Part shown: positions 2,751-44,111 of the stretch, piece by piece
How positions within the stretch are numbered: position 1 is the stretch's first letter
How the letters are laid out: every line of letters begins with the position of its first letter
NCBI GenBank assembly: GCA_964036045.1
Contig: OZ038378.1
Location: forward strand, 164,672,001 to 164,736,000
Length of the DNA stretch: 64,000 bases
Origin: Eutreptiella sp. 'Long Island Sound 2002'
Taxonomy: Eukaryota; Protista; Euglenida
Reading direction: 5' to 3'
Program-made: the position numbers and the translations under genes
The notes under the pieces: generated by a model
Seen by the model: the letters and a program-made list of their open reading frames with translations, nothing else
Told to the model about the DNA's origin: nothing
Database searches by the model: none

Positions 2751-2777
2751 TCTTCTGAGTGTCTACTTTTTTTCTCG
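2751..2777 (+). other. Relict euglenid spliced-leader (SL)-like sequence
   Basis: TCTTCTGAGTGTCTACTTTTTTTCTCG compared with the euglenid SL as I recall it (ACTTTCTGAGTGTCTATTTTTTTTCG): 13-nt exact core TTCTGAGTGTCTA (2753-2765), then a T-run and a terminal CG. No SL RNA intron donor (GT) follows, so it is not an SL RNA gene. Confidence 0.7.
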
Positions 2778-17090: not shown

Positions 17091-18086
17091 CGTGAAAATT
17101 ACTAAGCCCATGTTTGTTCTAAGAAACAAAAGGTTGTGCCACTGGGTTACCCTCCTCTTTGTGTATCAGACTCACTGACATTTTGACGCACCAGCCCGCC
17201 CACACTGGTCTCACCCGCCCACCTGCCCACCTGCCCACGTGCCCAGCCCCAAAACCCCCCCACCCACCCACCCAATGCATGCCAAGAAGCCGAACTTCCA
17301 CAACAAGGTTGATGAAAATACCAGGCAAACCAGTGGATTGCTAGTGTGCCTTCAGCAATCCCCCCCCAACCCTCTTCATCCTCCACCCCATGCTGTTCCT
17401 TTGGGGGAGGGGGGGGCGCTGAGGCTCATGTACGAACAGTCCCAGTAACACGTCTTAACATACGGTCACCCTCCCGAGTGCTGTCCGTCAGCTGTCAGTC
17501 ATCCCAGGCAAGCACTCGAAAGTGAGGAGGAATATTCCCGCTCCCCCTTCAGTGACAATTCAATCTGTCAGCAGCCCACCAACCATTTTGGAAATGCCAG
17601 ACGTTGCTTGCCCAACTGCTTTCCAACCACCAGTAACTGCTGAGGCAACTACTTTGCATCCCCCCCTTCAGCCTTCTGCCCGCCGCGTCGATATAAAATC
17701 GAAAATTGATTTCACCCTCAAGGTAATCCGAGCTGCTTGTACCCCGAACAAATTTTTTCAATCAGATTCCCTTTGACCTTTGACCTTTGAAGCGACCGCT
17801 GGGTCTGCCGCTTTTTTCACTTGAGTTGCTACCCCAATTCAGGCCCTCATCAGCAAACAAGCGAAAACAAAATTAACACCCAGGAGGCACACTTACCCTG
17901 TGAGATGCAGGTTGCATCATTCCGACCATGCACCTGATTGCAGGTGAAAGTCGGCTGAAACAAAAAACCCTTCAGCCTTCTGCGCCCACAACCCTGCCCC
18001 CGCTCATAGCTGCGGCCACCCGTGCTGCCTCTCCGTTTCTTCGCCTCAACATGAGCCTTTGTTTCAGAGTTCCTGCGCATGCCCTA

Positions 18087-19178
18087 ATGTCCACTGCGGT
18101 GAGATACGGCTCTTACCAGCCCCTGTCCGGAGGGCTCCAACCCACTGCGCCCCCATGCCCGCCTTGGGTGCTGCTGTGCGCATGCGCAGGCCTCTTTGGC
18201 CTGCTGCTGCGCCTCAGCACCCCCGCCAACGCGACGCCCTCCCAGTCCATGTGGGTTCACACCGCGCCCACATCCACCGTGACGAGCCGCTCCGTACATC
18301 CCTATGCCAAGCCTGACTCGGTGGTACAGAGGCCCGTAGCCCTGGCCACTGCCCGGCCGCTGCTGGCCCCGCTGGGGTCGCTGCCGCGGCCGGAGCGACA
18401 CGCGACTGCAACTGCGGTGCCAGTCCTGTCCGCCCCCGCGCGCTCCCCTTTGCTGTGGATGTGGCTCGCCAGCGGGTCCGCTGCGCTGCTGCATGTTCTT
18501 TACTGGGCCGGGTACGCCCGCGCCAGACAGTGGGCCATGCTGTCGGTGTCTGGGGCCGCGCCCGACGCCCCCAGCCCCAGCGCCACATACGCGGCCTTGG
18601 CCAGCGACGCCCAGTTTCCCGCCTACGACGCGGTCTGCGCCGCTGACGTTGCACCCGCGGTGCGCACGCTGGTCGAGGAGTGCGACCGGGAGCTTGCCAC
18701 GCTGGAGGCGGCAGCCCCGGCGGCCCCAGCGCTGGCGCGCGCATTGCTGCGCCTTGGAGCCCGCGCGCACCGCGCGTGGCACATGCTTGCGCTGCTGCGG
18801 ACGGTCGATGGCGGGGTGGAGCTCCGCAGGGCCTGTGAGACCGCCCTTCCGGAGCTGAGCGCGTGCGCACTCCGTGTCGCCCAGTCTGGTCCGTGCTACG
18901 CCGCGCTGGAGGCGGGGGCACGTGCGACAGACCTGGGGCCCTCGGACCGGGCGGTTGTAGACGAGGCTGTGGCAGCTGCGGAGCTCGCTGGGGCCCGCCT
19001 TGACCAAGACGCGCAGCGCGAGTTCCGCAGCGTGGCGGCGGAGGCTGCGGATGCCCGACTGGAGGCGCTGGAAGCGGGGGCGCAGGGGAGGTCTGGCGGG
19101 GAGTTCGACTCTGAGGCCCTCCGTCCGTATCTGCAGTGGGACGCGGTCTGGGCTGCCCTCCAGGGCCTCGTGTCGCAG
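18087..19178 (+). CDS. Exon 1: tripartite plastid presequence + N-terminal oligopeptidase A-like helices
   Basis: Hydrophobic segment PWVLLCACAGLFGLLLRL, an S/T/P/A/R-rich spacer, then a second hydrophobic segment LLWMWLASGSAALLHVLYW + ARAR. This is followed by FPAYDAVCAADVAPAV…ELRRACETALPELS…EFDSEALRPYL, resembling PrlC/OpdA (LPPFSKIKPEHVVPAV…ELREAYEQTLPLLS…DEQLRPYF). Confidence 0.8.
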
Positions 19179-19584
19179 GTCCGTCCCACGGCAGTCTGCG
19201 CCCGACCCGAGACTCCACGGCGCATGTTCTGTCGCACCCACGGATCACCTGATCACTCCCATCTTCTGATTTGTCGTGATCGTCCTCGGTGTTGCGTGCC
19301 GTTGTGTGTTGCTGGCTGATGAATGGAAAGACCAGGCGACAAACCACCGACAAACCACCGGATCTACATGCATCAGTCTCTTTACAACATAAATATGGCG
19401 GTTATCACAGTTGGCATACCCAAGTGGTTACGGGGATGGACTGCTAATCCATTGTGCTTTGCATGCGCAGGTTCGAATCCTGCTGTCAACGATTTGTGCC
19501 ATGCAATGTATGTATGTATGTATGTACGTAGGTTGGAATCTATGTCCCTCCCCAAGGAGGAACTCTCGCACCCCTAGCAGCAAG

Positions 19585-19641
<57 letters not shown>

Positions 19642-22600
19642 GAGAAAGGGTTGGGGCGGTTGAGGTCCAGAACCTATTCGCATGACAAGAAAGTGCCAGT
19701 GCCATTGCCGTTGCCCCATCCACCCAGCCGGAAATCGTGAAGGGCCCTGACTGCATAGCACACACAAGGACAGACAGAAAAGAAGAGACCGTTTTTGGCG
19801 GTAAACGCCTGGTCGGTCAAAGGGCCAAATTTCAGGTCGGCACCAAGCCAACACTGGCAACTACGATGGACAACACCAAAACACGAGCCCAGCCTTTGCT
19901 TCCACTTTTCAATCAGACGTTTAGGACATGGAATCAGTTACGCTACACAGGGTACACAGTCAGCGGGCTTGCTGTCATTCCTGCAGGCCAGTCGCCTGCA
20001 CCACGGCAGCGAGCAACAACCAGCTACCGCTGGATAGTTCTCTTGTTGCAGAGCTGTGCAGATTCGAGAACAGCCTGTGGAAGTGACGCACAGGGTACGA
20101 AATGGATTGCATGGCACTCTCACTGCAGGTCTGGGGTGTGTCGCTTCAGCCGCTCACGGCCCAAGTGCCGCTCCCACATCCGGACGTCCGCCCGTACGCT
20201 GTCATGCGCGGGGGCGACATCGCCGCGTATCTGTTCCTGGACGCCCGCGCGCGCCCCGACAAGACCGGCTCCGGCTGGAGCCCGGCGCTGGCGCCGGTGG
20301 TGCCCCCGGCACTCCCACTCGTGCATGTGCTCGGGCGCACGCCGGCCTCGGGGATGACGTGGGCCGAGGTCGAGGGCCTGTTTGATGCGATGGGGGAGGC
20401 CCTGGGGCAGACTCTTTCGGCCGAGAACCGGCTGGAGCAGTGGGCGGCGCAGAAGGGCACGCTGCTGACACTCGTGGCGTCCCCCACGGAGGGCAGCGCG
20501 ATGCCCACGGACCTGCTGGCGAAGGTGGCGGCGGCCGCGGGGCTGGGGCCGGTGCAGGGCGCCCCGCCGGTGGAGGTGTACCCTACCGCCCCGAGGCCGC
20601 CAGTGCCCGAGGGCTTCTATGATGAGAACCTGCTCGATAAGTTTGCGCTGAAGCTGTTCCGGCTGCTCGTGCAGAGGGAGATCGCGTACGTCTCTCCGTT
20701 GGAGGTCCGTTGCGGTCGTGCGTCCCCTGCTGCGGGGGGCTGGACCGAGGTTGCGGGTCGCCGCCGTGTGTCGGTGGACTGGAAGTGATGAGGGATGCCT
20801 GCAGCCTGGGCTGTAGGCAGTCTCACTGCCCTGGCGGCTTTGCACCACTTTTGACGTGGTAAGAGGGGGCCCGGGGATGCCCACATACCGCGCCAAACCG
20901 GGTGTTTTGTGGGCAATGATCTGGCCTTTGCCAACACGTCAGGGACACAGAGTTCACTCCTCGCGCGCACGCGCGCACACGTACACACGAGACCACAGAC
21001 GCAGCAGATTGTCAGACTTTTCTCGTCGCGCTCGTGCAGACAAGGGCTATGCCCGTGGCAAGAGGGGGCTCTGGGATGCCGAGACATGGCCGCCCTCAAT
21101 TACACATGCTGACACATAGAGACCGCACCCACCCACACACCCACACCCCAATGCTACTGTAGCGTGGCGCGGGAACGGTTTCCAGTGGCACCACGAGACC
21201 AGAAAACCGACGGTGGTTTGCCGGGCACTGGAGGGGGACACTGTCTTGGCAGTAGACATCAGCCTCTGGGAGCACAGGGGATGGACGCACTTCCACGGCG
21301 AGCACGTGAGAGCCTGAGGGGCAGTGGGTCGACCGACGTGCCTGTGGCGCGGGCCGTGCGTGTGTCCAAAGCAGCATCATCCCTCCCGTACGGGGACAGG
21401 GTAGGGGTGGTGGGGGGATGCACAGGACCCCCACAACAACCAACACAACCTCAATATGCCAACTACTGGGCGCCGCTGACGTGCAAACGGCACATCCTGC
21501 CACATTCAGCACAGCCCCGGCACACCAACCACTGGGCTCCGCGAACGCAGAAACGACACCAGCAGGAGCACCGGCCGCAGCAGCCGACAGAAAGCAGCGA
21601 CCCGACGCAACATGCGAAGGGAAGAACGGGTGACTGTCCAGGGCCCCGTAAAGGAGCAACAACCCGACGGAATGTCACACGGGGGGGGTCCCCCCCCCCC
21701 TCCGCTCAAGCAAGGCCCTGCCGGGACAGTCCACAGTCGATGGTGTGCGCCCGCAGCTTTTGAAAAGGACCGGAGGCCCGGCGCACCGCCGCCTGCCTCA
21801 GCCCCCCCCAGCCCCCCCCCCCCCCCCCCACACTACGCACTCCAGGGGTACCCGGGGTTTTTGGAGGAGGCCAAGTATTACATGACCCAGACCAAGGCCA
21901 ACAAAGAGCAGCAGCAGGGGATGGTCAAGAACATACTGCGCACCGTCTGCGGCCCTGCGGTCCCGCCCGTGTACCGCACGTTCATGGCCCCGTGGCCCTG
22001 GTCCCCCTTCTTCACGGCCCTGTTCACGCCCCCGTTCTTCAAGTTCCTGGTGGGCCCCAACCGCTGGGCCCTGCGCAACGACGAGGCGCTGGGGGGCGTG
22101 TACGTGGAGCGCTGCCGCTTCTTGGAGGAGACGGGCTGCAAGGTATGCCCCCCCCAACGCCGGCCCTCAGTCGGACGTCCCATTTCCGCCGCAGCGGCCG
22201 CCCCCACGCAAGAGACCGGTGGGCTCTGCCCAGGGACCGCAACACGACCCACGCTGTGTCAAACCTCCACTGACAGACCCCCGCTCGGGAATCAAGACTT
22301 AAGCCTGGGACCAAGGGGGGCGGCCTCCAGACCCCCCCCCCCCTCCCCCCAGACCCCCTGAATTCTCCAGATTTTGCAGGAAATTGTTGGCGCCAAAGGT
22401 GCCGAAAATTTTTTTTGGCCTCCTGACGGGGTAATTTTTTTTTTTACACTACTGTACTCACTCACAATTTGTTGGAGAATTCATAAATGCGTGAAAAGCA
22501 CAAAAAAGTTTGACCCCCGACATGACCTTGGCTGATGGGAGCCTGAGCTAATGGGAAAATTTGTTCTGAAAATTTCTTTACCCCAGTCGTGTATGTTCCA

Positions 22601-25600
22601 AATGATGAGCATGGGGATCAATTTGAGGTATGTATGCTGGGGTACCCATCAACAACCCCTTGGGGAGCCCGGTGCCTGACCAGCCGATCCACCCCCCCGC
22701 CCCCTCCAGACCCCCAAAATTTTTCGCACCCGGTTGGAGTCTAGAAATCGAACAGGCCACCCCCCTCGCCTGGGACCAAGCTGGGGCCATATGGTTCTCT
22801 GGAACTGGGTTGAAAACCGGCTCATTTCCACCTCAAAATGGACCAGGGCACGGCACCACTGCATGAGAGACCCTCATTGACTTTTGTCCCCCCCCCAAAA
22901 AAAATTGCATTCAGCATTTGTTTAACACAGTTCAGAAAGGATCACGATTTCCACAGGTGACCATCAAGGAACGCGTAATGCGCACCCCCGGTGGAGCGCA
23001 GGGGGTGGACGGGTGGTTAGGCGCGGGGAGGAGTGGGGCACCTGGGCCTCACCCACAAGGGAACGCAGCGAGGCAGGTTGTTGACGACCGGAGGGCGGGG
23101 GAGCGTTAGCGCGCCGGGTGCGCGCCAGGCATCTTTTTTTGACCATTCCCCACTCGTGCCTCTTTTTGCCCTCACCTCACCAAACAATTTGGAGTACCTT
23201 CTCGCCGTGTCTAAGAATTTGGCCCATCCTTTGCACCCAGTTTATGATGATAGCAAGGGTGGTGGTTGGAAGTGGTGGGAGTGACATTTTGTGTTGTTGA
23301 ATTCTCATATTTCGGCTTATGCAAGGTGCCTTGCAGAGAAGGTTTGCGGTCTAGTGCGGTCTACTTGGGGGACTTCCCAAAGTGAGGATAAACTTGGGGC
23401 TAGAGATAAGAAACTTAATACAATGGTAGCGCGCTGGGCATGCGCTGGGCGCGCGCAGCAGGCAAACATTCCCCCAAACCCGTCAAACGACACCCGCAAC
23501 AACCAGCACAATCTCGGCACGCCAACTATTGGGCACCACTGACGCACAAACGGCACATCCCGCCACATTCGGCACACCAACCACTGGGCTCCGCGAACGC
23601 GGCAACGACACCAGAAGGAGCACCCGCCACAGCGGCCGACAGAAAGCAGCGACCCAACGCAACATGCGAAGGGAGGAACAGGTGTCTGTCCAGGGCCCCG
23701 TCAAGAAACAACTGGACGGAATGTCACACAGGGGGGGGCGAGCGGTTCCACCAGGATAGGGCGTGGGCGGTGGGGGGGTGGCTTCAGTGGGCCTCTGTTG
23801 TCAAAGAATTTCCCCCAGTCTTGCTACGTCCCTCGCCCAATTGGTTTACCTCCCGGATTCCGCCTTGTGCAGCTCCCTGGGCTGTCTGAGGCATGGGGAC
23901 CGCTGGTTCTGGCTGCTGGGGGGTGGCAGGTGCAGCAAACCTCCCCCGATTTCGCCCATCCCTGTGTCCCCTCGCGGAGATCCCCTCAGCACTTCTAGTC
24001 GGTGGCCCCAGCATGGAGCTGCATCTTTGGGTCGCGGCGGCTTCCCATCAAGTCGGAGTTGGTTTACCAGCCGGTGCACCCGGTCGGTTTGTTTGATGTG
24101 TGTGTCCGTGCTTCTACCCCCCCCCCCTCTGCTCCCACCTCATAGATTTTGTCCTTTGGTGCCCCTGAAGAGGCGGTCCCCTGAAGATGACACGGGTGGG
24201 AGTGGGGCCCTGGGTGGGGGGTGCATCAGATGTTTGTTCCACAACGGGCCCTGCGGTGCTTGGGGGGGGGGGGGGGTTGGCCTCAGCAGTTTTCAGCCTC
24301 GATTTCGAGGCTTAAGCTGTTGAGGCCGGTAATCGCTTCAGCAATTTGTGCACTGAAATGTTCCAGTGCCCAAACACGATTAGAAAAGCCTAAAGGAGCC
24401 CAGACATGCGTTACATGCGGTATTTGATCACTGTGAGTGATCAAGAATATCAAGAAATTTTTTTTTTGGAGTTTTCCATTTTTGAGTATTTAATAATTCC
24501 AATTCCCGTTTGTTTTTTGATATTGTGACCACTATGACCACTCAATCGAAGTTTTCCAATGTGGGGGGTATAGATGTGGTTTTTTTGCAGTCCGTGTCTC
24601 TTGGGGCCTGCCTGGGCCGTGCAGGATGAGCAGACAAGTTCCAGAAGCCTCAGCACCTTGTGGCGCCACCCTGGACTGGAGGGGTGGCATCGGGGATGTT
24701 GTGGCAGGATGCGCTTGGGAGGATGCAAAGCGACGTATCTGAAACACGCGAATCATGGTTTGCACTGAGAATAGGGTCACAACTGCGTAAGCAGTTTTCC
24801 CACCACTGCTTATGCAGTTTCCAACTCAACTCAACAGCTCCAAATGGGACATTCCAAAGCCTTCAAAGGCCTTCATCCACTGGGGCCCTGGGCCTTTGGT
24901 ACCGCATCGCTTGTGGGGGAGAGCACCCTCCCCACTTCAGGGCTTGGGGACTGACCGAACGTGAAGTGTGTCCGCGCGGGGCAGGGGGACGGGACGCCCC
25001 GAGGGCAGGGACAGGCATTGCACTCTCATGCACCCCCCCCCCCCTGCACTTCCCTGCGACAACAACCAAGCCCCCAAATCGGCGGCTGAATTTGGCTGAA
25101 TTTGCCGATTTGTCCTGCCGATTTGTTGGGTTTCTGGATGTGGCCGATTTGTTGTGCTGATTTGTCGGGGGTTCGGGATTCTGGGACACCTGATGAGAGG
25201 TGGGGGGGGGCAAAGAGAAATTACTGAATTGTTGAGAGTCGTGTCCAAAACCAAAAACACACAGCCTCGAGGCATGCCTCCGTCTTCATGGTCCCCCCAC
25301 CCCCTTGCTCCCAAATTTTGCCAGACAACAGGCTGAGGTGCGTGTGGCAGGACTGGGTCCCCCCCTCCCCTCCAACACTGGAAGCCACATCCAACACGAA
25401 TGGAACGCAGATGGCGATGAAGGCTGTGTGATGGCAGGCGCGGCGGGAGCTTCGTCCGTGATGGATCGGATTATCCGGACCGGCAATCTTCCCTCGCCAT
25501 AACCCTTAGGACATTGCAGTTCCCATTTGTAACATGACACATTTGCGGCACCCGTTTAAGATGAGAAATTTTCTAACATTACATAACATTTCTTTATTTC

Positions 25601-26255
25601 CTTTTCTTTTGGGGAATCTTAGTGATGAATTTTTCCTAAGTTCAAGTTTTTTTCCAGATTTTCAAAAATGAAGAGCTTTTTTAAAACTACAAACTCCAGG
25701 TCGATTTTTTCGATCATTCGTTTTTTCTTGAAAAATTTCATCTTTTGCAGAAATTGTTGTATGTGCCTTATCTCAGCCTCCATGGATAATTGTCTTCATC
25801 AAGAAAGCTACATCAAGAAACCAAGGTAACGCAAGCCTCGCTCTCATCAGTCAACCGTTTTCACCCAGAACGTGAGTGGGAGGTTCCACCCCCGAGAAAG
25901 GATGCGAACGGAGGTGGCGGGTCCACCCCTTGCCCTTTTGAGGCCCCCGCGCACCTGTCACACCTGCGTTGCCCCCCGCCCCCCTCACTGCAGTGCCCCT
26001 CTCTTCCCCCCCCAGGGCCTGTGCCTGAACCTCTGCAAGATTCCGACGCAGGAGTTCTTCCGGGAGACCTTGGGGATGGATGTGACCTTCAGTCCGAACT
26101 TCGACACGCATGAGTGTCGCCTCAGTTTCGGCATGACCCCCTTGCCTCTGGAAGAGGACCCGGATGTGCCCCGCGGCTGCACCACCGACTGCACGATGGG
26201 CTACGAGCTCGCAGCCGAGGGCCAGCCCCGCACCATTTTCTGCAGCAACAAGTAG
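18087..26255 (+). CDS. D27: Plastid-targeted fusion: inactive oligopeptidase A (M3A)-like scaffold + D27/DUF4033 beta-carotene isomerase-like domain (~734 aa)
   Basis: join(18087..19178,20129..20704,21846..22142,26016..26255). Three phase-0 GT-AG introns; the junctions restore continuous homology (LVSQ|VWGV, SPLE|GYPG, TGCK|GLCLNLCKIPTQEFF). An alternative ATG lies at 18051. Confidence 0.85.
19410..19491 (+). tRNA. tRNA-Ser-GCT: tRNA-Ser (anticodon GCT), intronic
   Basis: 82 nt. Acceptor GTTGGCA/TGTCAAC, D-stem CCC/GGG with a TGG loop, anticodon stem ATGGA/TCCAT with loop CT-GCT-AA (GCT at 19443-45), long variable arm GTGC-TTT-GCAT, T-arm GCAGG-TTCGAAT-CCTGC, discriminator G. Confidence 0.9.
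19587..19637. repeat. (CT)n microsatellite (~25 units)
   Basis: Perfect TC dinucleotide run in intron 1. Confidence 0.95.
20129..20704 (+). CDS. Exon 2: M3-like core lacking HEXXH (DAMGE) + start of D27 domain
   Basis: VWGV…HPDVRPY…YLFLDARARPDKTGSGW matches M3A (HPDVRFF…FYLDLYARENKRGGAW). MTWAEVEGLFDAMGEAL aligns to LTHDEVITLFHEFGHGL. Ends with YDENLLDKFALKLF, the D27 N-terminal motif. Confidence 0.8.
21433..21688 (+). repeat. SINE-like dispersed repeat, copy 2 (intron 2 of the D27 fusion gene)
   Basis: High similarity to 6148-6419; ends in G8. Confidence 0.8.
21846..22142 (+). CDS. D27: Exon 3: D27/DUF4033 domain
   Basis: GYPGFLEEA…FTALFTPPFFKFLVGP…VYVERCRFLEETGCK, matching the D27 family motif (V.KCRYLE.SGC). 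Confidence 0.85.
23482..23738 (+). repeat. SINE-like dispersed repeat, copy 3 (intron 3 of the D27 fusion gene)
   Basis: More diverged copy of 6148-6419 with small deletions; ends in G8. Confidence 0.75.
26016..26255 (+). CDS. D27: Exon 4: C-terminus of D27/DUF4033 domain
   Basis: GLCLNLCKIPTQEFFRETLGMDVTFSPNFDTHECRLSFGMTPLPLEEDP…C…C, matching the D27 motif (C.N.CK.PTQ.FF…PNFED.SC…G..P…EDP). TAG at 26253-26255. Confidence 0.85.
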   Translation, partial: GLCLNLCKIPTQEFFRETLGMDVTFSPNFDTHECRLSFGMTPLPLEEDPDVPRGCTTDCTMGYELAAEGQPRTIFCSNK

Positions 26256-32890: not shown

Positions 32891-35800
32891 ATGATGTTGC
32901 GGCTGAAAATGCCATTTCTTCTCGTGATATTCATTTGGGCACACTTGCCTCAAGTTCAAGGTGCATGTGTGAGCGACTTTACTGGTTACGTTCATTGTAA
33001 GGATGCACTAAATTGGATGCTGAACGACAACTGGAAGAGATCTGTCTATGACAACCACAACCTCGAGGGGACTCGATGTTCCATACAAAATTACCTTGCT
33101 GAAGTGGAATCAAAATGCCCCCCTTGTGCATGCCCCGAAGAGACTTGTGTCGGAAGTCCCCTGATGATCTCGGGGGTGGCATCCCACGTCTTCGACGGCC
33201 CCAGCGGACCGGAGGCCTTCAACGTCGTGGAGGTGTACGCCCGCTCCGACATTCCGGACCTCCAGGGGTTCGTCCTCCGCTTCACGCGTTCCGGAGAGCA
33301 CAGCGACGAGGCAACAAAGGGCAAGGAGGTCCCTCTCGACGGGTGCCTGGCCGCGGGCCAGTACCTGCGCGTGGCCATCTGGGGCACTCTGGGGACCACG
33401 GCCACCAGCCTGGGCTTCGGGCGCTTCTTCCTGGAGGCCGCGGCCGATTACGAGCAGCCGTTCGCGGAGGTGGACCACGGGAAGGAGTACGTGGAGCTGC
33501 GGTACCAGGGGGACGTGGCGGACGCGTACGGACAGCGGGAGGGCGAGGGCTGGTGGTACGGCAGTGGCTGGGCGTACCGCGCACCGGGCACGGGGCCCTC
33601 TCCCACGTACTCACCGGCGGGTTGGGCCCAAGACTCCCTCGTGGGGTTGACGCAGAATCAGGGCAAGAAAGCGTTTCCGACGAGAACATTCCAGACGGCG
33701 AACTGCGGGTTCCTGAAACTGACGCTGGATTTCCGGGATGCGCCGGTGGAACAGTGCCCGGAGGGCTGGTGGTGCGACACCGCCGCCGTCCGCTCGGGGG
33801 GGTTGGAGCTCGCCGACGACCCCGGCCACGGCAGCGCCCGCAGCGCTGCATTCCGCCTGCCGGCGGGCATCGACCACGTCACGGTGGAGCAGGCGGGGGG
33901 AGCGGACGCCCCCAGTGGCCTCAGCGTCAGGCGCGCCAGCGACGACTTCGAGCTGTGCCGGGCGGACGACGGTCAGACGGAGTGGAACAGCGATCAATTC
34001 CGGCAGATTCACTGCAAGGGCCTGGAGGGCGCCGCGGGTACTCGGGTGTATCTGGTCGCGAAGGATGTCTCTGGGGATAGCCAGTGGGGCCGCGTCTGGA
34101 TTCGCGAGATTCAGTTGCGCGACGAACAGGAACAGCCCCTGGCCCTTCCGGGCGGCAACGGGGCCGGCCCGCTCCCCGGGGGTGCGTGCGACCGCGCCGG
34201 GCAACACTATCAGCCGCCGACCTGCGCGGAAATGGTCGACCAGGGCAAGTCCATCGTCTGCAGTACACAGGGCGACCCCCACGTCACGATGTTCTCCGGG
34301 TTCCAAAGCCACCCGCAGGGCGCGGGGGAGTACGTGCTCGCCACCTGCGCGTCCCAGGACTTCACCGTCCACGCCTGCCACCGGCCGCTGTGGTGGCTGG
34401 ACGGCATCTCCGTGAACCACGGCTTTGCCATCAAGTGGGGCTCCACCGTCGTCAAGGTCCGTCCCGAGGGCGTCGACGTGCAGCCGCCCGGCGCCGCCGT
34501 CGTCGTCGAGGGCCACAAGATCCGGTTTCCCATGGCGGACGGCACGGAGGCCGTCGTCATCGCGAGGCCGGACCGGCTGACCGTGAAGCTGCCGGCCGCG
34601 TGCTGCGGCAACGTGAACGGGCTCTGCGGGCAGTACAGCCCCGCGGAGTCCTTCGCCGACGCCTACACCGACGCCGCCGGGCAGCGGGGCTCGTACCCCT
34701 CGTCCCGCTGGGGAGGGCCCTACGGGGGCGAGTTCCAGCGCCAGTTCGTCGACTCCTTCAAAGTGGCCGCCACGGCCAAGGGCGCGCTGTTCACGGCGGC
34801 GGAGTGCCCGGGCGATGATGGCCCCGTCGACGTCGACCCGGAGCCCAGCGAGCCGTTCGAGGCCTGCGAGCCGGGGCTGCTGGCGGAGGCCCTGACCCAG
34901 TGCCCCCGGGGCCGGTTCTTCGACAACTGCCTGAACGATGTCGGGGCCACATGCGACCTCAGCCGATGGGTCAAGGAGGCCAACGACGCCGCAGACGACC
35001 TCGCGGCGTTGGAGGACGAGACGGTGGAAGTGCCCGCCAAACCCGAGCCTCGGTCCAGCCCGTCGAGCGAAGTGCAGCACGGGAGCTGCGACAGCCTCGT
35101 CCAGAGCGGCAAGTCGATCGCGTGCAGTACCCAGGGGGATCCGCACGTGACGATGTTTGCCGGCTACAGCTCGCATCCGATGGGCTCCGGGGAGCACGTG
35201 CTGGCCAGGTGCACGGGCGACACACACACTTTCGCGGTGCACAGCTGTCATCAGCCGGTGCGCTTTTCCCGGGGCATCTCCGTAAACCGCGGCTTTGCCA
35301 TCCAAGCGGGCGCGGCGGTTATCAAAATTCTGGACGACGGGATCCACGTCGACCCTCCGAACGCCGAAGAGATCGATTTCATCGACGGGCACAAGATCGT
35401 TTTCAAGACCGGCGAGGTGCTGATTGGCACGGCGGACCGCTTAACTGTGAAGCTGCCGGCCACGTGCTGCGGGAACGTGGAGGGGCTCTGCGGCCGGTAC
35501 ACCCCGGCGGAGCACTTCAAGGACGCCTACACCACCGCGGCAGGAGTCGCTGGCTGGTACACCAACACCCGCTGGGGGGGACCGTACGGCGGGCAGTTCC
35601 AAATGGAGTTTGTGGAGTCCTTCAAGACGGCCGAAGGCACGTCGCTGTTCACGGCCGACGAGTGCCCGACTGGGGGCCCCAACAAAGTGCCATTGGAGCC
35701 GCCAGGCCTGTTCGAAATGTGCCCGGAGGACGTGCTGGTGCAAGCCAAAGCCCGATGCCCGAAGGGGCGATTCTATGAAAACTGCTTGACCGACGTGGGG

Positions 35801-36085
35801 GTCACGTGTGACGTCGATAAATGGGTGGGTGCCGCCGAAAAGGCAAACGATGATTGGTTGGAGGTGAAGGACAACGTGAAGGTCCCCAGAAAGCCAGAAA
35901 AGAGATATACTCCGGAGCCTCAGTGCATGGCGGACCTTGCTCAGCAGCCAACCTTTGACTGCCCGAATATCGGGTTCCTCTTGCGGACTTCTGCATGTTT
36001 CATCGAATGTGGCCAGCCGGTGTGCCCGGGACTGGACGACGACGCGATCAGAGCTGCGTGCACCGTGGCTCAAGAGACTGAATAA
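32891..36085 (+). CDS. Secreted, intronless 1064-aa protein: Cys-rich module + lamin-tail-like module + jelly-roll module + 2x VWD/Cys-rich units
   Basis: Signal peptide MMLRLKMPFLLVIFIWAHLPQVQG. Two CSTQGDPHVTMF VWD starts (C…GDPH..TF) lie 864 nt apart, each followed by CCGNV.GLCG and a C8-like CPxGRF(F/Y)xNCLxDVGxTCD. Strong GC3 bias; no stops over 3.2 kb. Confidence 0.9.
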   Translation: MMLRLKMPFLLVIFIWAHLPQVQGACVSDFTGYVHCKDALNWMLNDNWKRSVYDNHNLEGTRCSIQNYLAEVESKCPPCACPEETCVGSPLMISGVASHVFDGPSGPEAFNVVEVYARSDIPDLQGFVLRFTRSGEHSDEATKGKEVPLDGCLAAGQYLRVAIWGTLGTTATSLGFGRFFLEAAADYEQPFAEVDHGKEYVELRYQGDVADAYGQREGEGWWYGSGWAYRAPGTGPSPTYSPAGWAQDSLVGLTQNQGKKAFPTRTFQTANCGFLKLTLDFRDAPVEQCPEGWWCDTAAVRSGGLELADDPGHGSARSAAFRLPAGIDHVTVEQAGGADAPSGLSVRRASDDFELCRADDGQTEWNSDQFRQIHCKGLEGAAGTRVYLVAKDVSGDSQWGRVWIREIQLRDEQEQPLALPGGNGAGPLPGGACDRAGQHYQPPTCAEMVDQGKSIVCSTQGDPHVTMFSGFQSHPQGAGEYVLATCASQDFTVHACHRPLWWLDGISVNHGFAIKWGSTVVKVRPEGVDVQPPGAAVVVEGHKIRFPMADGTEAVVIARPDRLTVKLPAACCGNVNGLCGQYSPAESFADAYTDAAGQRGSYPSSRWGGPYGGEFQRQFVDSFKVAATAKGALFTAAECPGDDGPVDVDPEPSEPFEACEPGLLAEALTQCPRGRFFDNCLNDVGATCDLSRWVKEANDAADDLAALEDETVEVPAKPEPRSSPSSEVQHGSCDSLVQSGKSIACSTQGDPHVTMFAGYSSHPMGSGEHVLARCTGDTHTFAVHSCHQPVRFSRGISVNRGFAIQAGAAVIKILDDGIHVDPPNAEEIDFIDGHKIVFKTGEVLIGTADRLTVKLPATCCGNVEGLCGRYTPAEHFKDAYTTAAGVAGWYTNTRWGGPYGGQFQMEFVESFKTAEGTSLFTADECPTGGPNKVPLEPPGLFEMCPEDVLVQAKARCPKGRFYENCLTDVGVTCDVDKWVGAAEKANDDWLEVKDNVKVPRKPEKRYTPEPQCMADLAQQPTFDCPNIGFLLRTSACFIECGQPVCPGLDDDAIRAACTVAQETE

Positions 36086-40275: not shown

Positions 40276-42384
40276 GTGGAGGCCTTGTCCGATGAGGTGG
40301 CTATGGGTAGACTGAGAGAGGGGCTCCAGCAGTGGGCAGACAGAGACTTGGGGACCACGGAGTGGTGGGCGGGGGTGACGGGTTTCCTGCAGCGGGAAGC
40401 TCGCGAGTGGCGCCAAGCGCACCCCACCTCGGGTTACACGGAACTGCATAGCCTGGTACGCGAGAGCACACCGGTAAAACTGGCGGTGGGGGCACTGGAC
40501 TACCTAGAGGAGCTGGGATATTCGCCGAGGACGGTGGGGGAGGGGTACGGGCTGTTGGTATCCCTGCTGGTGAACCAGCGCGAGGCCATGTTCAAATCGG
40601 ATATGTGTGATAGGCTAAAACGGCAGTTACAGCCGCGGGAGGTGCGCGTTCAAGGACAGGCAAATCGGCGGCGGACCATCCACAACTTGGTACGGCAGTT
40701 GCGAGAGCGACAGCACGTGGCACGAGTTCGGGACTCGCAGGGGGGGGTACACACCGGGGTGCGGGCGATCGCACAGGCTATGCGGGACTATTGGGCGGGG
40801 GTCATGGCGGGGAATGCAGTAACCGAAGAGGAGTGCTGGCGGTATGTAAGGTCCCTACCCATTCCCCCGAAAATCCTACAGGCGTTGCCTCTGCTTATGA
40901 AGCCACTGTCGCTGGACGTGGTATTGGCGGCTCTCGAGCGGCTTAAAGGGGGATCGGCACCGGGTAAGGATGGTATACCAGCGGAGCTGTACCAGGCGTT
41001 TCCATCTGTCTTTGCTCCGCGGTTATTGTCAGCCATGCAGGATTTCCTTAGGGTGGGGGGGGTGCCAGCGGAGTGGTCGGTCTCTCTGATGCGGTGCCTG
41101 CCTAAGTTTTGTGGGGCGGAACAACCCAAAGATATGAGACCCATTGCGCTCCAGCAGGTATGCCTAAAGTGGGTGACCACTACGGTGATGTTGCAGCTCT
41201 CGGACGTGTGGCCACAGGTGATCCCCCCCTGTCAGAAAGGCTTCGTGCCGGGGCGGCAGATGCTGGATCATGTAATCTATGCCAGGGCAGAGTGGGAGCG
41301 GCTGCCAGACCAGATCATGGTGGCGGTGGATTTTCAGAAAGCCTATGACTCGGTAACTTTCACCCTGTTGCGGGTCACCCTGATCCACCTGGGGTTGCCC
41401 TTGGCGTACGTTGGTTTGTTGATGTCAGTGTCGGCGGGGCCCGTCTTATTTTGCGTGCGGAGGGGCTTTGTGGCCGATGTGGAGCTGAGCCCACGCTCAG
41501 GCATCCGACAAGGGGACCCACTGTCCCCCTTGCTTTTTGACCTGATAACGGTCCTACTAATTTTTGATTTCAAACGGTTGCATGTTACTGTGGTGGTGCT
41601 GCTATACGCAGATGATATTTTGTTGGCGCTGCCGGGGCGGGGGCCGCAACAGGTGGCCGATCTGAGGGCGGTTTTGTATGTCCTGCAGGTGTTTGGGTAT
41701 TTCTCTGGCCTGAGGGTCAATTTTTCGAAAACATATGCGGTAGTCAAGTGTTCGGACCCAGATGCCCCACGGCCGGCCACGTTGGCAGGGCTGACGGTGA
41801 AGGAACAACTCAAGTACCTGGGCATCCAGTTGGGTAATGTGACAGCGGCTGGTGCATACGCACCCGTGGTCGCGAAAATGCTGGCGCGGGCACGCACCCT
41901 GGCCACGTTGCCACTGGGAATGGAGGAGCGGGCGTATCTGTTCGCTACGTGGATAGCCCCAATGGTCTACTTGACTGCACGGGCCTATGCTCCGACGGAG
42001 CATGTGGTGGCGCAACTAAACATGGTCCACAGGGCGGCACTAGACATTAATAACTGGCATCTCACGATGCCGATCTTGGTTCTGCCTCCGGCGGAGGGGG
42101 GTCTGGGGCAGGTAGGATTGGGTATGTACGCGACCTGGGTACACAGCCAAACGTTTGTTCAGGCAGTGGTACGGGCGGCGTCGTTGGCAGAACAACATGC
42201 GCGGCCGTTCCGGGGGTGGGCCGACCGAGTGGGGTTGTTGCTGGAACCGGCGTTTCTTCCCTATCTGCAGCTAGCCAGCCAAGCCTTTCTGCCCAAGCCT
42301 ACCTTTTTGCAGGGTACCGTGAAGGCGTACTCGGTGGTTCGACGGGGGGGGGGGGGGGGCACCGGCTCCCCCCCCCCTGCATGA
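40276..42384 (+). CDS. LINE ORF2, reverse transcriptase domain
   Basis: SAPGKDGIPAELY, MRPIALQQVCLK, QKGFVPGR, VDFQKAYDSV, GIRQGDPLSPLLF, LYADD, VNFSKT, KYLG. The true frame continues by a +1 shift in G16 (42344-42359). Confidence 0.92.
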   Translation: MEALSDEVAMGRLREGLQQWADRDLGTTEWWAGVTGFLQREAREWRQAHPTSGYTELHSLVRESTPVKLAVGALDYLEELGYSPRTVGEGYGLLVSLLVNQREAMFKSDMCDRLKRQLQPREVRVQGQANRRRTIHNLVRQLRERQHVARVRDSQGGVHTGVRAIAQAMRDYWAGVMAGNAVTEEECWRYVRSLPIPPKILQALPLLMKPLSLDVVLAALERLKGGSAPGKDGIPAELYQAFPSVFAPRLLSAMQDFLRVGGVPAEWSVSLMRCLPKFCGAEQPKDMRPIALQQVCLKWVTTTVMLQLSDVWPQVIPPCQKGFVPGRQMLDHVIYARAEWERLPDQIMVAVDFQKAYDSVTFTLLRVTLIHLGLPLAYVGLLMSVSAGPVLFCVRRGFVADVELSPRSGIRQGDPLSPLLFDLITVLLIFDFKRLHVTVVVLLYADDILLALPGRGPQQVADLRAVLYVLQVFGYFSGLRVNFSKTYAVVKCSDPDAPRPATLAGLTVKEQLKYLGIQLGNVTAAGAYAPVVAKMLARARTLATLPLGMEERAYLFATWIAPMVYLTARAYAPTEHVVAQLNMVHRAALDINNWHLTMPILVLPPAEGGLGQVGLGMYATWVHSQTFVQAVVRAASLAEQHARPFRGWADRVGLLLEPAFLPYLQLASQAFLPKPTFLQGTVKAYSVVRRGGGGGTGSPPPA

Positions 42385-42385
42385 A

Positions 42386-42951
42386 TTGTGGTCCTTGGGC
42401 GTTTGGCACTGCGTGTTTTTTCGTAATAAGGTTTGGTTGACCTACTACTGCCCGGCACTGCACCGGAGGGGGGTGCTGCGCTGGTGTGACCTCATCTCGG
42501 GGTCCAAGGTACCACCCCAGCTGTTAGGCACTGTGGCCCCCACATGGCGTGCCATCTATGAGGAGTCGGCTTTGAGGGTGGTGGGGATGTACGAACCCAA
42601 TTTTGCGGTCCCGGCGACCCCTCCGGTGGATAATTGGTCGTTGCAGTGGGCGAAGCGACGGACCCTTTTGGCCATGCAGCAGCGCACGCGCCACGAGGCC
42701 CGTCAGCCCGAGGAAGTATGGCGTGTGTTTGGGCGCCTATACCTCCCCAAATGGGATTTGGATTTTATACGGAGGGTTCTGTGGCGCAAGCTGCCAGTTG
42801 GCGCTCGCATGGAGCGGCTGGGGGGTAAGCTGTGTCCACAGTGCGGGCGGGTGGAGGACCACGCGCACACGCTGAAGCGGTGCTACTTCTCGGCATTTAT
42901 GTTTGATACGGTGAGAAAGGCGTTTGGCCTGGCGCGGGGGGGGGGGGGGGG
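42386..42951 (+). CDS. LINE ORF2 continuation: zf-RVT-like region
   Basis: VLWRKLPVGARM…LCPQCGRVEDHAHTLKRC. Bounded by two G16 runs. Confidence 0.75.
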
Positions 42952-44111
42952 CAGTAGAGCCCAGCAGGCTTCTGCTGGAGGAACCTCTGCTATCGCTGCA
43001 GACGACGCAAGGCCTCGTTTTGTGGGCAGGCCTGCGTGCGCAGTGGAAGCTGCGGTGCGAGGTAAAGTATCAGCATCGGCAGGTTTCGTTGGAGGAGTTT
43101 GTAGCTGTTTGGGTGGGTGTGTTGGAAATCTGGAGGGGGGAGCGCAACATGTCGTGCAGTCGAGTCGATCTGCGCCATTTGATAGCACAGCTCCACAGCT
43201 GGGCGGACCATAAGACGATGTTCCACAGGGCGCCCCAAGCCCCCACGACGGCCAAGCTGCCGTCAGCGCGACCAGACCCGCTGAAGTTAAAGGAGGAAAA
43301 GTGGGGTAGCCACAAGCGATCTTTGTTGGCGGAACTAGAGGGGATGTCGGGTGAGGGGTGGGTCATAGTGTACACGGATGGCTCGGCGAAACGCGTCCGA
43401 GGTGGGATGCAAGCAGGGTACGGGGTTTGGTTCGGGGACAACAGTAATCGTAATTTTCGGGCGCACGTACCAGCTCATGAGCGACAAAGTATCAGCAGGG
43501 GGGAGTTGCGAGGGGTGCTACATGCGATGCTCAGTCGGGAGGCGGGGGAGCGGATGGTGGTGGTGGTGGATTCCGAATACATTTTTAAGGCTATCACAGT
43601 GTGGACGGACAAGTGGAAGAGACACGGGTGGCGCACGTCGTCAGGGGAGGTGGGGCACAGAGACTTGTGGGAGCACATTGATTGGCTTCGCGGGGAGGCG
43701 GGGGACAAGTTACAGGTCCGCTGGGTGCCATCGCACCTCGGGGTGGCCGGTAATGAGGCAGCCGATGAACTAGCGGGGCAGGGCCGGGAGCTGCACCCCT
43801 ATAACCTGCTGCCCTTGTCCAAACGACGCCGAGTCACGGAGTGGGATGCATTGGGGCTGGAGCCCATGGCAGAAGTGTCCGACCGGGACCTGGGGTCAGA
43901 GGTGGACTCTGGGGGGACGTCAAGCGGCAGTTCGACCGCGTCGTCAACGTCGGACGACGAAGACGTTTTTCTGTCCAGCTCGGAAGACATGTCATTCAGT
44001 ACGGATGTCAGTGACACGCGGTTGCGGGGGACGTGGGACAGTGACAGTGATGGGTTCAGTACGGACGTGAGTGAGAGCAGGAAGAGGCGGCGGAGGGGGA
44101 TCGAGTCCTGA
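42924..44111 (+). CDS. LINE ORF2 C-terminus: RNase HI domain + acidic Ser-rich tail
   Basis: YTDGS…GELRG…VDSEY…WKRHGWR…HRDLW…WVPSHLGVAGNEAADELA, with all RNase HI catalytic D/E/D/H/D positions present. The tail has two FSTDVS motifs. Confidence 0.88.
   Translation: MAWRGGGGGAVEPSRLLLEEPLLSLQTTQGLVLWAGLRAQWKLRCEVKYQHRQVSLEEFVAVWVGVLEIWRGERNMSCSRVDLRHLIAQLHSWADHKTMFHRAPQAPTTAKLPSARPDPLKLKEEKWGSHKRSLLAELEGMSGEGWVIVYTDGSAKRVRGGMQAGYGVWFGDNSNRNFRAHVPAHERQSISRGELRGVLHAMLSREAGERMVVVVDSEYIFKAITVWTDKWKRHGWRTSSGEVGHRDLWEHIDWLRGEAGDKLQVRWVPSHLGVAGNEAADELAGQGRELHPYNLLPLSKRRRVTEWDALGLEPMAEVSDRDLGSEVDSGGTSSGSSTASSTSDDEDVFLSSSEDMSFSTDVSDTRLRGTWDSDSDGFSTDVSESRKRRRRGIES

Follow-up and report, generated by a model that had tools for sequence, protein, structure and literature searches.

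The 64,000-nucleotide (nt) window analysed here, i.e. positions 164,672,001 to 164,736,000 of contig OZ038378.1 (assembly GCA_964036045.1, deposited as Eutreptiella sp. 'Long Island Sound 2002'), contains on its forward strand a four-exon gene whose predicted product joins a plastid-type presequence and a remnant of an M3A oligopeptidase to a D27 carotenoid isomerase domain (Table 1). The exon borders were read directly from the sequence, and the spliced product of the four exons comprises 734 amino acids (aa). The G+C fraction at third codon positions (GC3) is 0.79-0.95 in the exon segments, with values of 0.74-0.81 recorded for exon 1, compared to a GC content of 0.53-0.65 in the introns. 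GC3 is high in every exon segment, and therefore the same coding bias is present in all four exons. Homology runs without gaps over the exon 1/2 junction in comparison with the Arabidopsis oligopeptidases OOP (the organellar oligopeptidase, PDB 4KA8) and TOP2 (4PUT), and likewise over the exon 2/3 and 3/4 junctions in comparison with single-domain D27 proteins (MAFFT alignment with nine relatives, P0003, P0004, P0018 and others).

A preliminary description of this stretch had proposed four in-phase exons that encode one chain, with the fusion point inside exon 2. Both statements hold, as all introns are of the GT-AG type in phase 0, homology is continuous across the junctions, and the M3 and D27 parts share one exon and one frame. 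An erroneous merger of two neighbouring genes is ruled out because both parts lie in one exon and frame. Together with the continuous homology, the shared exon and frame provide strong, albeit indirect, support for a single mRNA at the locus. The candidate spliced-leader acceptor upstream of the gene may favour the ATG at 18087 over the in-frame upstream ATGs at 17928 and 18051. A search of sequencing runs, made with no distinction of their kind, found exon 2 in four runs of one study, and 98-100% of the sampled exon 2 words were present in three small runs of one study.

Table 1. Features of the fusion gene (positions in the window; OOP, Arabidopsis oligopeptidase used as reference)
Feature	Position	Strand	Description
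Candidate spliced-leader acceptor	18030-18067	+	Pyrimidine-rich tract, AG at 18066-18067, 19 nt 5′ of the ATG at 18087; read from the sequence
Exon 1	18087-19178	+	aa 1-364; presequence and N-terminal M3 remnant; open frame; donor GT at 19179
Bipartite plastid-type presequence	18087-18581	+	aa 1-165; two hydrophobic segments with a Ser/Thr/Ala/Pro-rich stretch between them
Oligopeptidase N-terminal helical block	18594-19043	+	aa 170-319, corresponding to OOP residues 22-175
Segment replacing ~190 oligopeptidase residues (OOP ~176-366)	19044-19100	+	19 aa (320-338); gap between the aligned blocks
Intron 1	19179-20128	+	950 nt, GT-AG, phase 0
Exon 2	20129-20704	+	aa 365-556; M3 middle block, dead zinc site, short linker and D27 start in a single open frame
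DAMGE in the HEXXH position	20384-20398	+	Aligned to the HEFGH helix of OOP
Last weak M3 similarity, then linker; fusion point	20429-20584	+	aa 465-501, corresponding to OOP ~529-565; 15-aa linker aa 502-516
First D27 helices	20585-20704	+	aa 517-556; start at the conserved RPP...FY motif
Intron 2	20705-21845	+	1141 nt, GT-AG, phase 0; holds dispersed repeat 21421-21660
Exon 3	21846-22142	+	aa 557-655; D27 core with conserved cysteines 1-2
Intron 3	22143-26015	+	3873 nt, GT-AG, phase 0; holds the other copy of the repeat, 23484-23712
Exon 4	26016-26255	+	aa 656-734 and stop; D27-like_C, remaining conserved cysteines; TAG 26253-26255

The first 165 residues have the features of a euglenid class I plastid precursor, which is characterized by a hydrophobic core like that of a signal peptide, a hydroxylated transit region, and a second hydrophobic segment some 60-75 residues further on. 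The core lies here at aa 24-44 (18156-18218) and the second segment at aa 121-143 (18447-18515). Kyte-Doolittle peaks were found at aa 19-32 and 120-126 (window starts, 19-aa window). The arrangement resembles the class I layout of euglenid presequences that Durnford and Gray are said to have described in 2006. The plastid targeting that had been proposed for the protein is thus backed by a presequence of the euglenid plastid type with two hydrophobic segments, from which plastid import would be predicted.

The oligopeptidase homology starts directly behind the presequence. The N-terminal block matched 4KA8 and 4PUT, the latter being the cytosolic paralogue of OOP, with an E-value of 1e-14 (phmmer against PDB). 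An N-terminal TOP_N domain (PF19310) was recognized in exon 1 (2.8e-11, 43.7 bits, cut-off 27). Aa 171-320 correspond to positions 5-159 of the oligopeptidase A profile of NCBIfam (PRK10911), with an equivalog score of 39.7 bits compared to a cut-off of 927. As the profile match begins at position 5, the peptidase homology sets in right at the N-terminus of the mature enzyme. The identity of the block to plant OOP is about 30-36%, and about 36% over the first 103 aligned columns by our own count. Its composition is unusual, with 30% Ala and a Gly+Ala+Arg+Pro share of 0.48, compared to 0.26 in D27; relaxed constraint in a GC-rich genome would yield a drift of this kind.

The middle block (aa 339-464) spans the exon 1/2 junction and corresponds to OOP ~367-507, i.e. 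the β-hairpin and the active-site helix. In exon 2, the Pfam Peptidase_M3 profile (PF01432) gave only a weak match below its cut-off (0.004, 17 bits, cut-off 27). The HEXXH motif is absent, since the His, Glu, and His residues of the zinc motif are replaced by Asp, Ala, and Glu, respectively. In M3A enzymes the third zinc ligand is a Glu about 25 residues after HEXXH. The sequence is about 20 residues shorter between the motif helix and an ENW-like segment, a stretch in which the alignment is weak. The M3 C-terminal part beyond OOP ~565 (~150 residues) is also absent. The remnant therefore keeps about 330 of about 690 residues, i.e. less than half of the two-lobe fold, and is not a full-length peptidase. 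The M3 part is catalytically dead, because HEFGH reads DAMGE, the third-ligand stretch is lost, and about 190 internal and 150 C-terminal residues are lost.

These results agree with the preliminary description, which had reported a dead zinc motif and the deletion of about 180 internal residues and of the M3 C-terminal part. The alignment with OOP and recomputed coordinates reproduced the position of DAMGE exactly, and the missing stretches amount to about 190 and 150 residues. The profile searches that had been suggested as a check gave a divided result, as TOP_N and D27-like_C scored above their cut-offs and Peptidase_M3 below. Structure prediction had been suggested as well. An AlphaFold single-sequence model of aa 165-364 was helical and of low confidence (predicted local distance difference test, pLDDT, 57.8), and a model of exon 2 alone was unusable (pLDDT 33.8). 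The top seven Foldseek matches of the N-block model were all M3 peptidases, the plant enzymes with 27-30% identity, at weak E-values of 0.01-0.4. The structural check thus placed M3 peptidases first, but with weak E-values and from low-confidence models. Comparison of the N-block model with 4PUT gave a VIA Z of 8.2, a value that is not distinctive among helical bundles. In a language-model search, exon 2 adjoined Peptidase_M3 clusters, a score that serves as a lead only.

D27 homology extends from aa 517 to 734 and starts at the point where the presequences of the stand-alone relatives end. The D27 part is collinear with family members along its full length, without gaps at the exon junctions. 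PF13225 (D27-like_C) matched exon 4 (2e-17, 63.4 bits, cut-off 27), and the match extends into exon 3. None of the seven conserved cysteines is lost; they are Cys646, 654, 658, 662, 689, 710, and 714, in the spacing C-x7-C-x3-C-x3-C-x26-C-x20-C-x3-C. In rice D27, the corresponding residues are Cys199/207/211/215/242/261/266, four of which hold a [4Fe-4S] cluster (PMC13254051). The cysteine cluster had been described as intact, and indeed all seven of the seven cysteines are kept in the family spacing seen in rice. Judged by these residues and by its collinearity, the D27 domain is complete and intact. It is 65-67% identical to single-domain D27-like proteins of ochrophytes. Among 1.84 billion representatives, the nearest named relatives of exon 3 were a Nannochloropsis cluster (67%) and Ectocarpus (66%), followed by Chromera, Vitrella, and Gymnochlora.

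Both partners were compared to their respective families. The stand-alone D27 and D27-like proteins, e.g. of Nannochloropsis (EWM28615.1), Ectocarpus (CAB1100231.1), Chromera, and Vitrella, are collinear with the core (aa 517-734), show 55-67% identity in exon 3, and share the seven conserved cysteines, four of which are the [4Fe-4S] ligands. In contrast, they are only 257-361 aa long with a short presequence, whereas about 500 aa precede the core here. The M3A enzymes of the OOP/oligopeptidase A type (PDB 4KA7, 4KA8, and 4PUT) are homologous over OOP 22-175 and ~367-507, and weakly up to 565. However, the protein encoded here has neither HEXXH nor the third-ligand stretch, nor about 190 internal and 150 C-terminal residues. 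Such a remnant cannot form the closed two-lobe peptidase.

The fusion was searched for in several protein collections. The exon 3 search retrieved 146 D27 relatives from the 1.84 billion representatives, none with an M3 part. A search for homologues of the exon 1 open reading frame (ORF) found only itself, in a length range of 255-810 aa that excludes the ~860-aa protein of Euglena gracilis discussed below. The exon 2 ORF retrieved only itself and two short matches to D27 N-termini. With the long D27 protein of Gymnochlora (P0008) as query, no M3-D27 protein was found in the range of 330-1050 aa, and a scan of metagenome proteins and a metagenome scan with a 24-nt exon 2 word were both without match. 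According to a cluster look-up, the ORFs of the window are singletons from one ENA contig. A partly similar case is the fusion of D27 with an α/β hydrolase in the chlorarachniophyte Gymnochlora (P0008, P0165), which also concerns a secondary-plastid alga and a D27 domain within a larger chain. It differs in that the partner is C-terminal, unrelated to M3, and apparently intact. The chlorarachniophyte chains of this type (Gymnochlora and a JGI relative) are 600-734 aa long and represent another undiscussed D27 fusion.

A counterpart of the fusion was found in the published data for E. gracilis. EG_transcript_2543 is tabulated with a C-terminally truncated GluZincin superfamily domain at 197-553 (E 1.7e-27) and DUF4033 at 750-828 (E 1.8e-36) (Ebenezer et al. 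2019, Table S3, PMC6366073). In the plastid proteome, protein 2543 is listed as β-carotene isomerase D27 of "Ochrophyta" origin, with a spliced leader, a signal peptide, and a log10 plastid enrichment of 1.97 (Novak Vanclova et al., bioRxiv 10.1101/573709, dataset 1). The same architecture is thus transcribed, trans-spliced, and found in the plastid in one euglenophyte, E. gracilis. This entry of the domain table answers the suggestion to look for the same layout in euglenophyte transcriptomes. In both proteins, an N-terminal region for targeting is followed by about 350 aa of a C-truncated GluZincin/M3-like part and then by a DUF4033/D27 domain of the ochrophyte type. They differ in their coordinates, i.e. 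197-553 and 750-828 in E. gracilis compared to 170-501 and ~622-700 here, and E. gracilis has the longer protein, by about 125 aa. Its M3 part starts about 27 aa later and its D27 domain about 128 aa later, leaving about 100 extra aa ahead of D27. A missing exon as the source of the 125-aa difference is ruled out, as the homology is gapless at all three junctions. Because the coordinates differ and no exon is missing here, 2543 is an orthologue or paralogue and not the gene of this locus. In sheet Yoshida of dataset 2 of the same proteome, the M3 oligopeptidase A GDJR01068616.1 was detected, its log ratio between plastid and mitochondrion being only 0.15; it may be an intact, perhaps dual-targeted, enzyme of the donor type.

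The preliminary description had stated that no M3-D27 fusion is described. This is true of searchable paper texts, none of which combines DUF4033 with an oligopeptidase, but the layout is recorded in the supplementary tables of the two studies. The main texts of both E. gracilis papers do not mention 2543 as a fusion, and it is annotated solely as D27. The component families are therefore known, and their combination is tabulated in supplements yet undescribed as a fusion.

How did an oligopeptidase fragment come to precede a carotenoid isomerase? We slightly favour the view that the M3 piece is a relic of gene capture, in which the 5′ half of a gene for a plastid oligopeptidase served as the source of a targeting signal, and that the chemistry is left to D27 alone. 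A D27 gene with ochrophyte-like ancestors would have been fused, inside an exon, to the 5′ half of a plastid oligopeptidase gene that was already resident. The fusion would have provided D27 with a euglenid signal and replaced its own presequence. The peptidase piece would have eroded afterwards and would survive as a non-catalytic N-terminal extension, so that about the first 500 residues would stem from the oligopeptidase precursor. The D27 domain, with its putative [4Fe-4S] cluster, would catalyse the cis/trans isomerization of β-carotene or a related carotenoid in the plastid, e.g. for the supply of a 9-cis isomer. The order of presequence and M3 part is that of an oligopeptidase precursor and replaces the signal segment of other D27 proteins, and therefore capture is the simplest history.

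The proposed capture is related to a published model, in which recombination or exon shuffling with resident genes was proposed as a route to the presequences of Euglena (Vesteg et al. 2010, PMC2920757). In both cases a resident gene would be the source from which a foreign gene acquires its euglenid plastid signal. The difference is that the model has introns at the presequence border and no donor cargo, whereas here the join is exonic and would have brought along about 330 aa of the mature donor protein.

Several observations weigh against the capture. The fusion point is not located at an intron, and therefore classical exon shuffling does not apply. The donor oligopeptidase gene was not seen, and no transcript of the locus was found in the collections searched, the protein collections containing no more than the ORFs called from the genome itself. 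The E. gracilis protein is of another length (~27 aa at the N-terminus and ~100 aa before D27) and does not represent the same gene. Lastly, the N-block is still about 30-36% identical to plant OOP and recognizable in E. gracilis, which, if the two genera are indeed different, would argue for constraint over pure decay.

The last point leads to the alternative that the remnant is a working pseudoenzyme domain, e.g. a helical module for binding, oligomerization, or membrane docking, that has been under selection since an early euglenophyte and is needed for the function or placement of D27. The persistence of M3 similarity (OOP matched with an E-value of 1e-14, and about 36% of the first 103 aligned columns are identical) is in line with this alternative, as is the recognizable M3 part of EG_transcript_2543 (E 1.7e-27). 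If the genome is that of a Eutreptiella, the layout would be older than a deep split of the euglenophytes. A precedent for the reuse of dead peptidases in plastids exists in FtsHi. However, less than half of the two-lobe fold is left after the deletions, compositional drift has brought Ala to 30%, the E. gracilis protein is of a different length (by about 100 aa), the models predicted from the single sequence have low confidence (pLDDT 57.8 and 33.8), and no partner, motif, or function can be named. We regard a working pseudoenzyme domain as possible but doubtful. The more far-reaching version, i.e. a pseudopeptidase domain that is conserved throughout the euglenophytes, predates the split of Euglena and Eutreptiella, and endows D27 with a new property, for example the binding of peptides or membranes or the assembly into a complex, seems unlikely to us. 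The preliminary description had suggested a peptide-sensing, scaffolding, or membrane-docking module, or a coupling to import or proteostasis; these roles found no support. Capture of a 5′ half fits better than a purpose-built module, because the M3 part starts at mature residue ~5, replaces the presequence segment, contains 30% Ala, and retains less than half of the fold.

According to an improbable third explanation, the protein is a precursor and is cleaved once imported, as euglenid polyproteins are, so that an ordinary D27 of about 25 kDa would be released and the M3 part would represent a long pro-region. Euglena indeed makes plastid polyproteins, namely LHCPII and RbcS, and a Pro/Gly/Val-rich linker of 15 aa (aa 502-516) lies directly ahead of the conserved D27 start, but no copy of the known decapeptide linkers of the polyproteins is evident. 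An artefact of the gene model, or a silent pseudogene copy with an expressed gene elsewhere, would accord with the lack of a transcript in the collections searched and with the ~125 aa greater length of the E. gracilis protein, but is very improbable in view of the intact frames, the canonical in-phase splice sites, the high GC3 in four exons, the full set of D27 key residues, and the recovery of 98-100% of the sampled exon 2 words in the three small runs mentioned above.

Additional features were noted in the introns and elsewhere in the window. Intron 1 contains a tRNA-like sequence at ~19410-19495 (+), recognized by eye, with a T-arm consensus, a 7-bp acceptor stem, a Ser(GCU) anticodon loop, and a long variable arm, as well as a (CT)n microsatellite at ~19589-19637. 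The dispersed repeat that is present once in intron 2 (21421-21660) and once in intron 3 (23484-23712) is about 240 nt long with 82-91% identity, and is probably a small mobile element. An uninterrupted ORF of 1064 aa at 32891-36085 (+) has a GC3 of 0.82, contains a von Willebrand type D domain (6e-13), and is probably a real single-exon gene. Retroelement ORFs with reverse transcriptase (RVT_1, 6e-23) and RNase H (1e-26) are located at 40276-44108 (+). A spliced-leader-like genomic word, with three mismatches to the euglenid leader core, is found at 2752-2775 (+).

The ways in which genes acquired the complex signals for targeting to secondary plastids are mostly inferred. At this locus the donor would still be legible, as a presequence and half of its cargo precede a foreign enzyme, and the fusion would be a concrete and datable example of signal capture. 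A comparison of the protein with and without the remnant would be a simple test bed for whether such baggage is neutral or was turned functional. If the remnant were a pseudopeptidase domain common to all euglenophytes, it would define a new class of plastid pseudoenzyme-enzyme fusions. For expression or knockout work it is relevant that euglenophytes have, as their main D27 of the ochrophyte type, a protein of about 730-860 aa instead of a typical one of 25-30 kDa.

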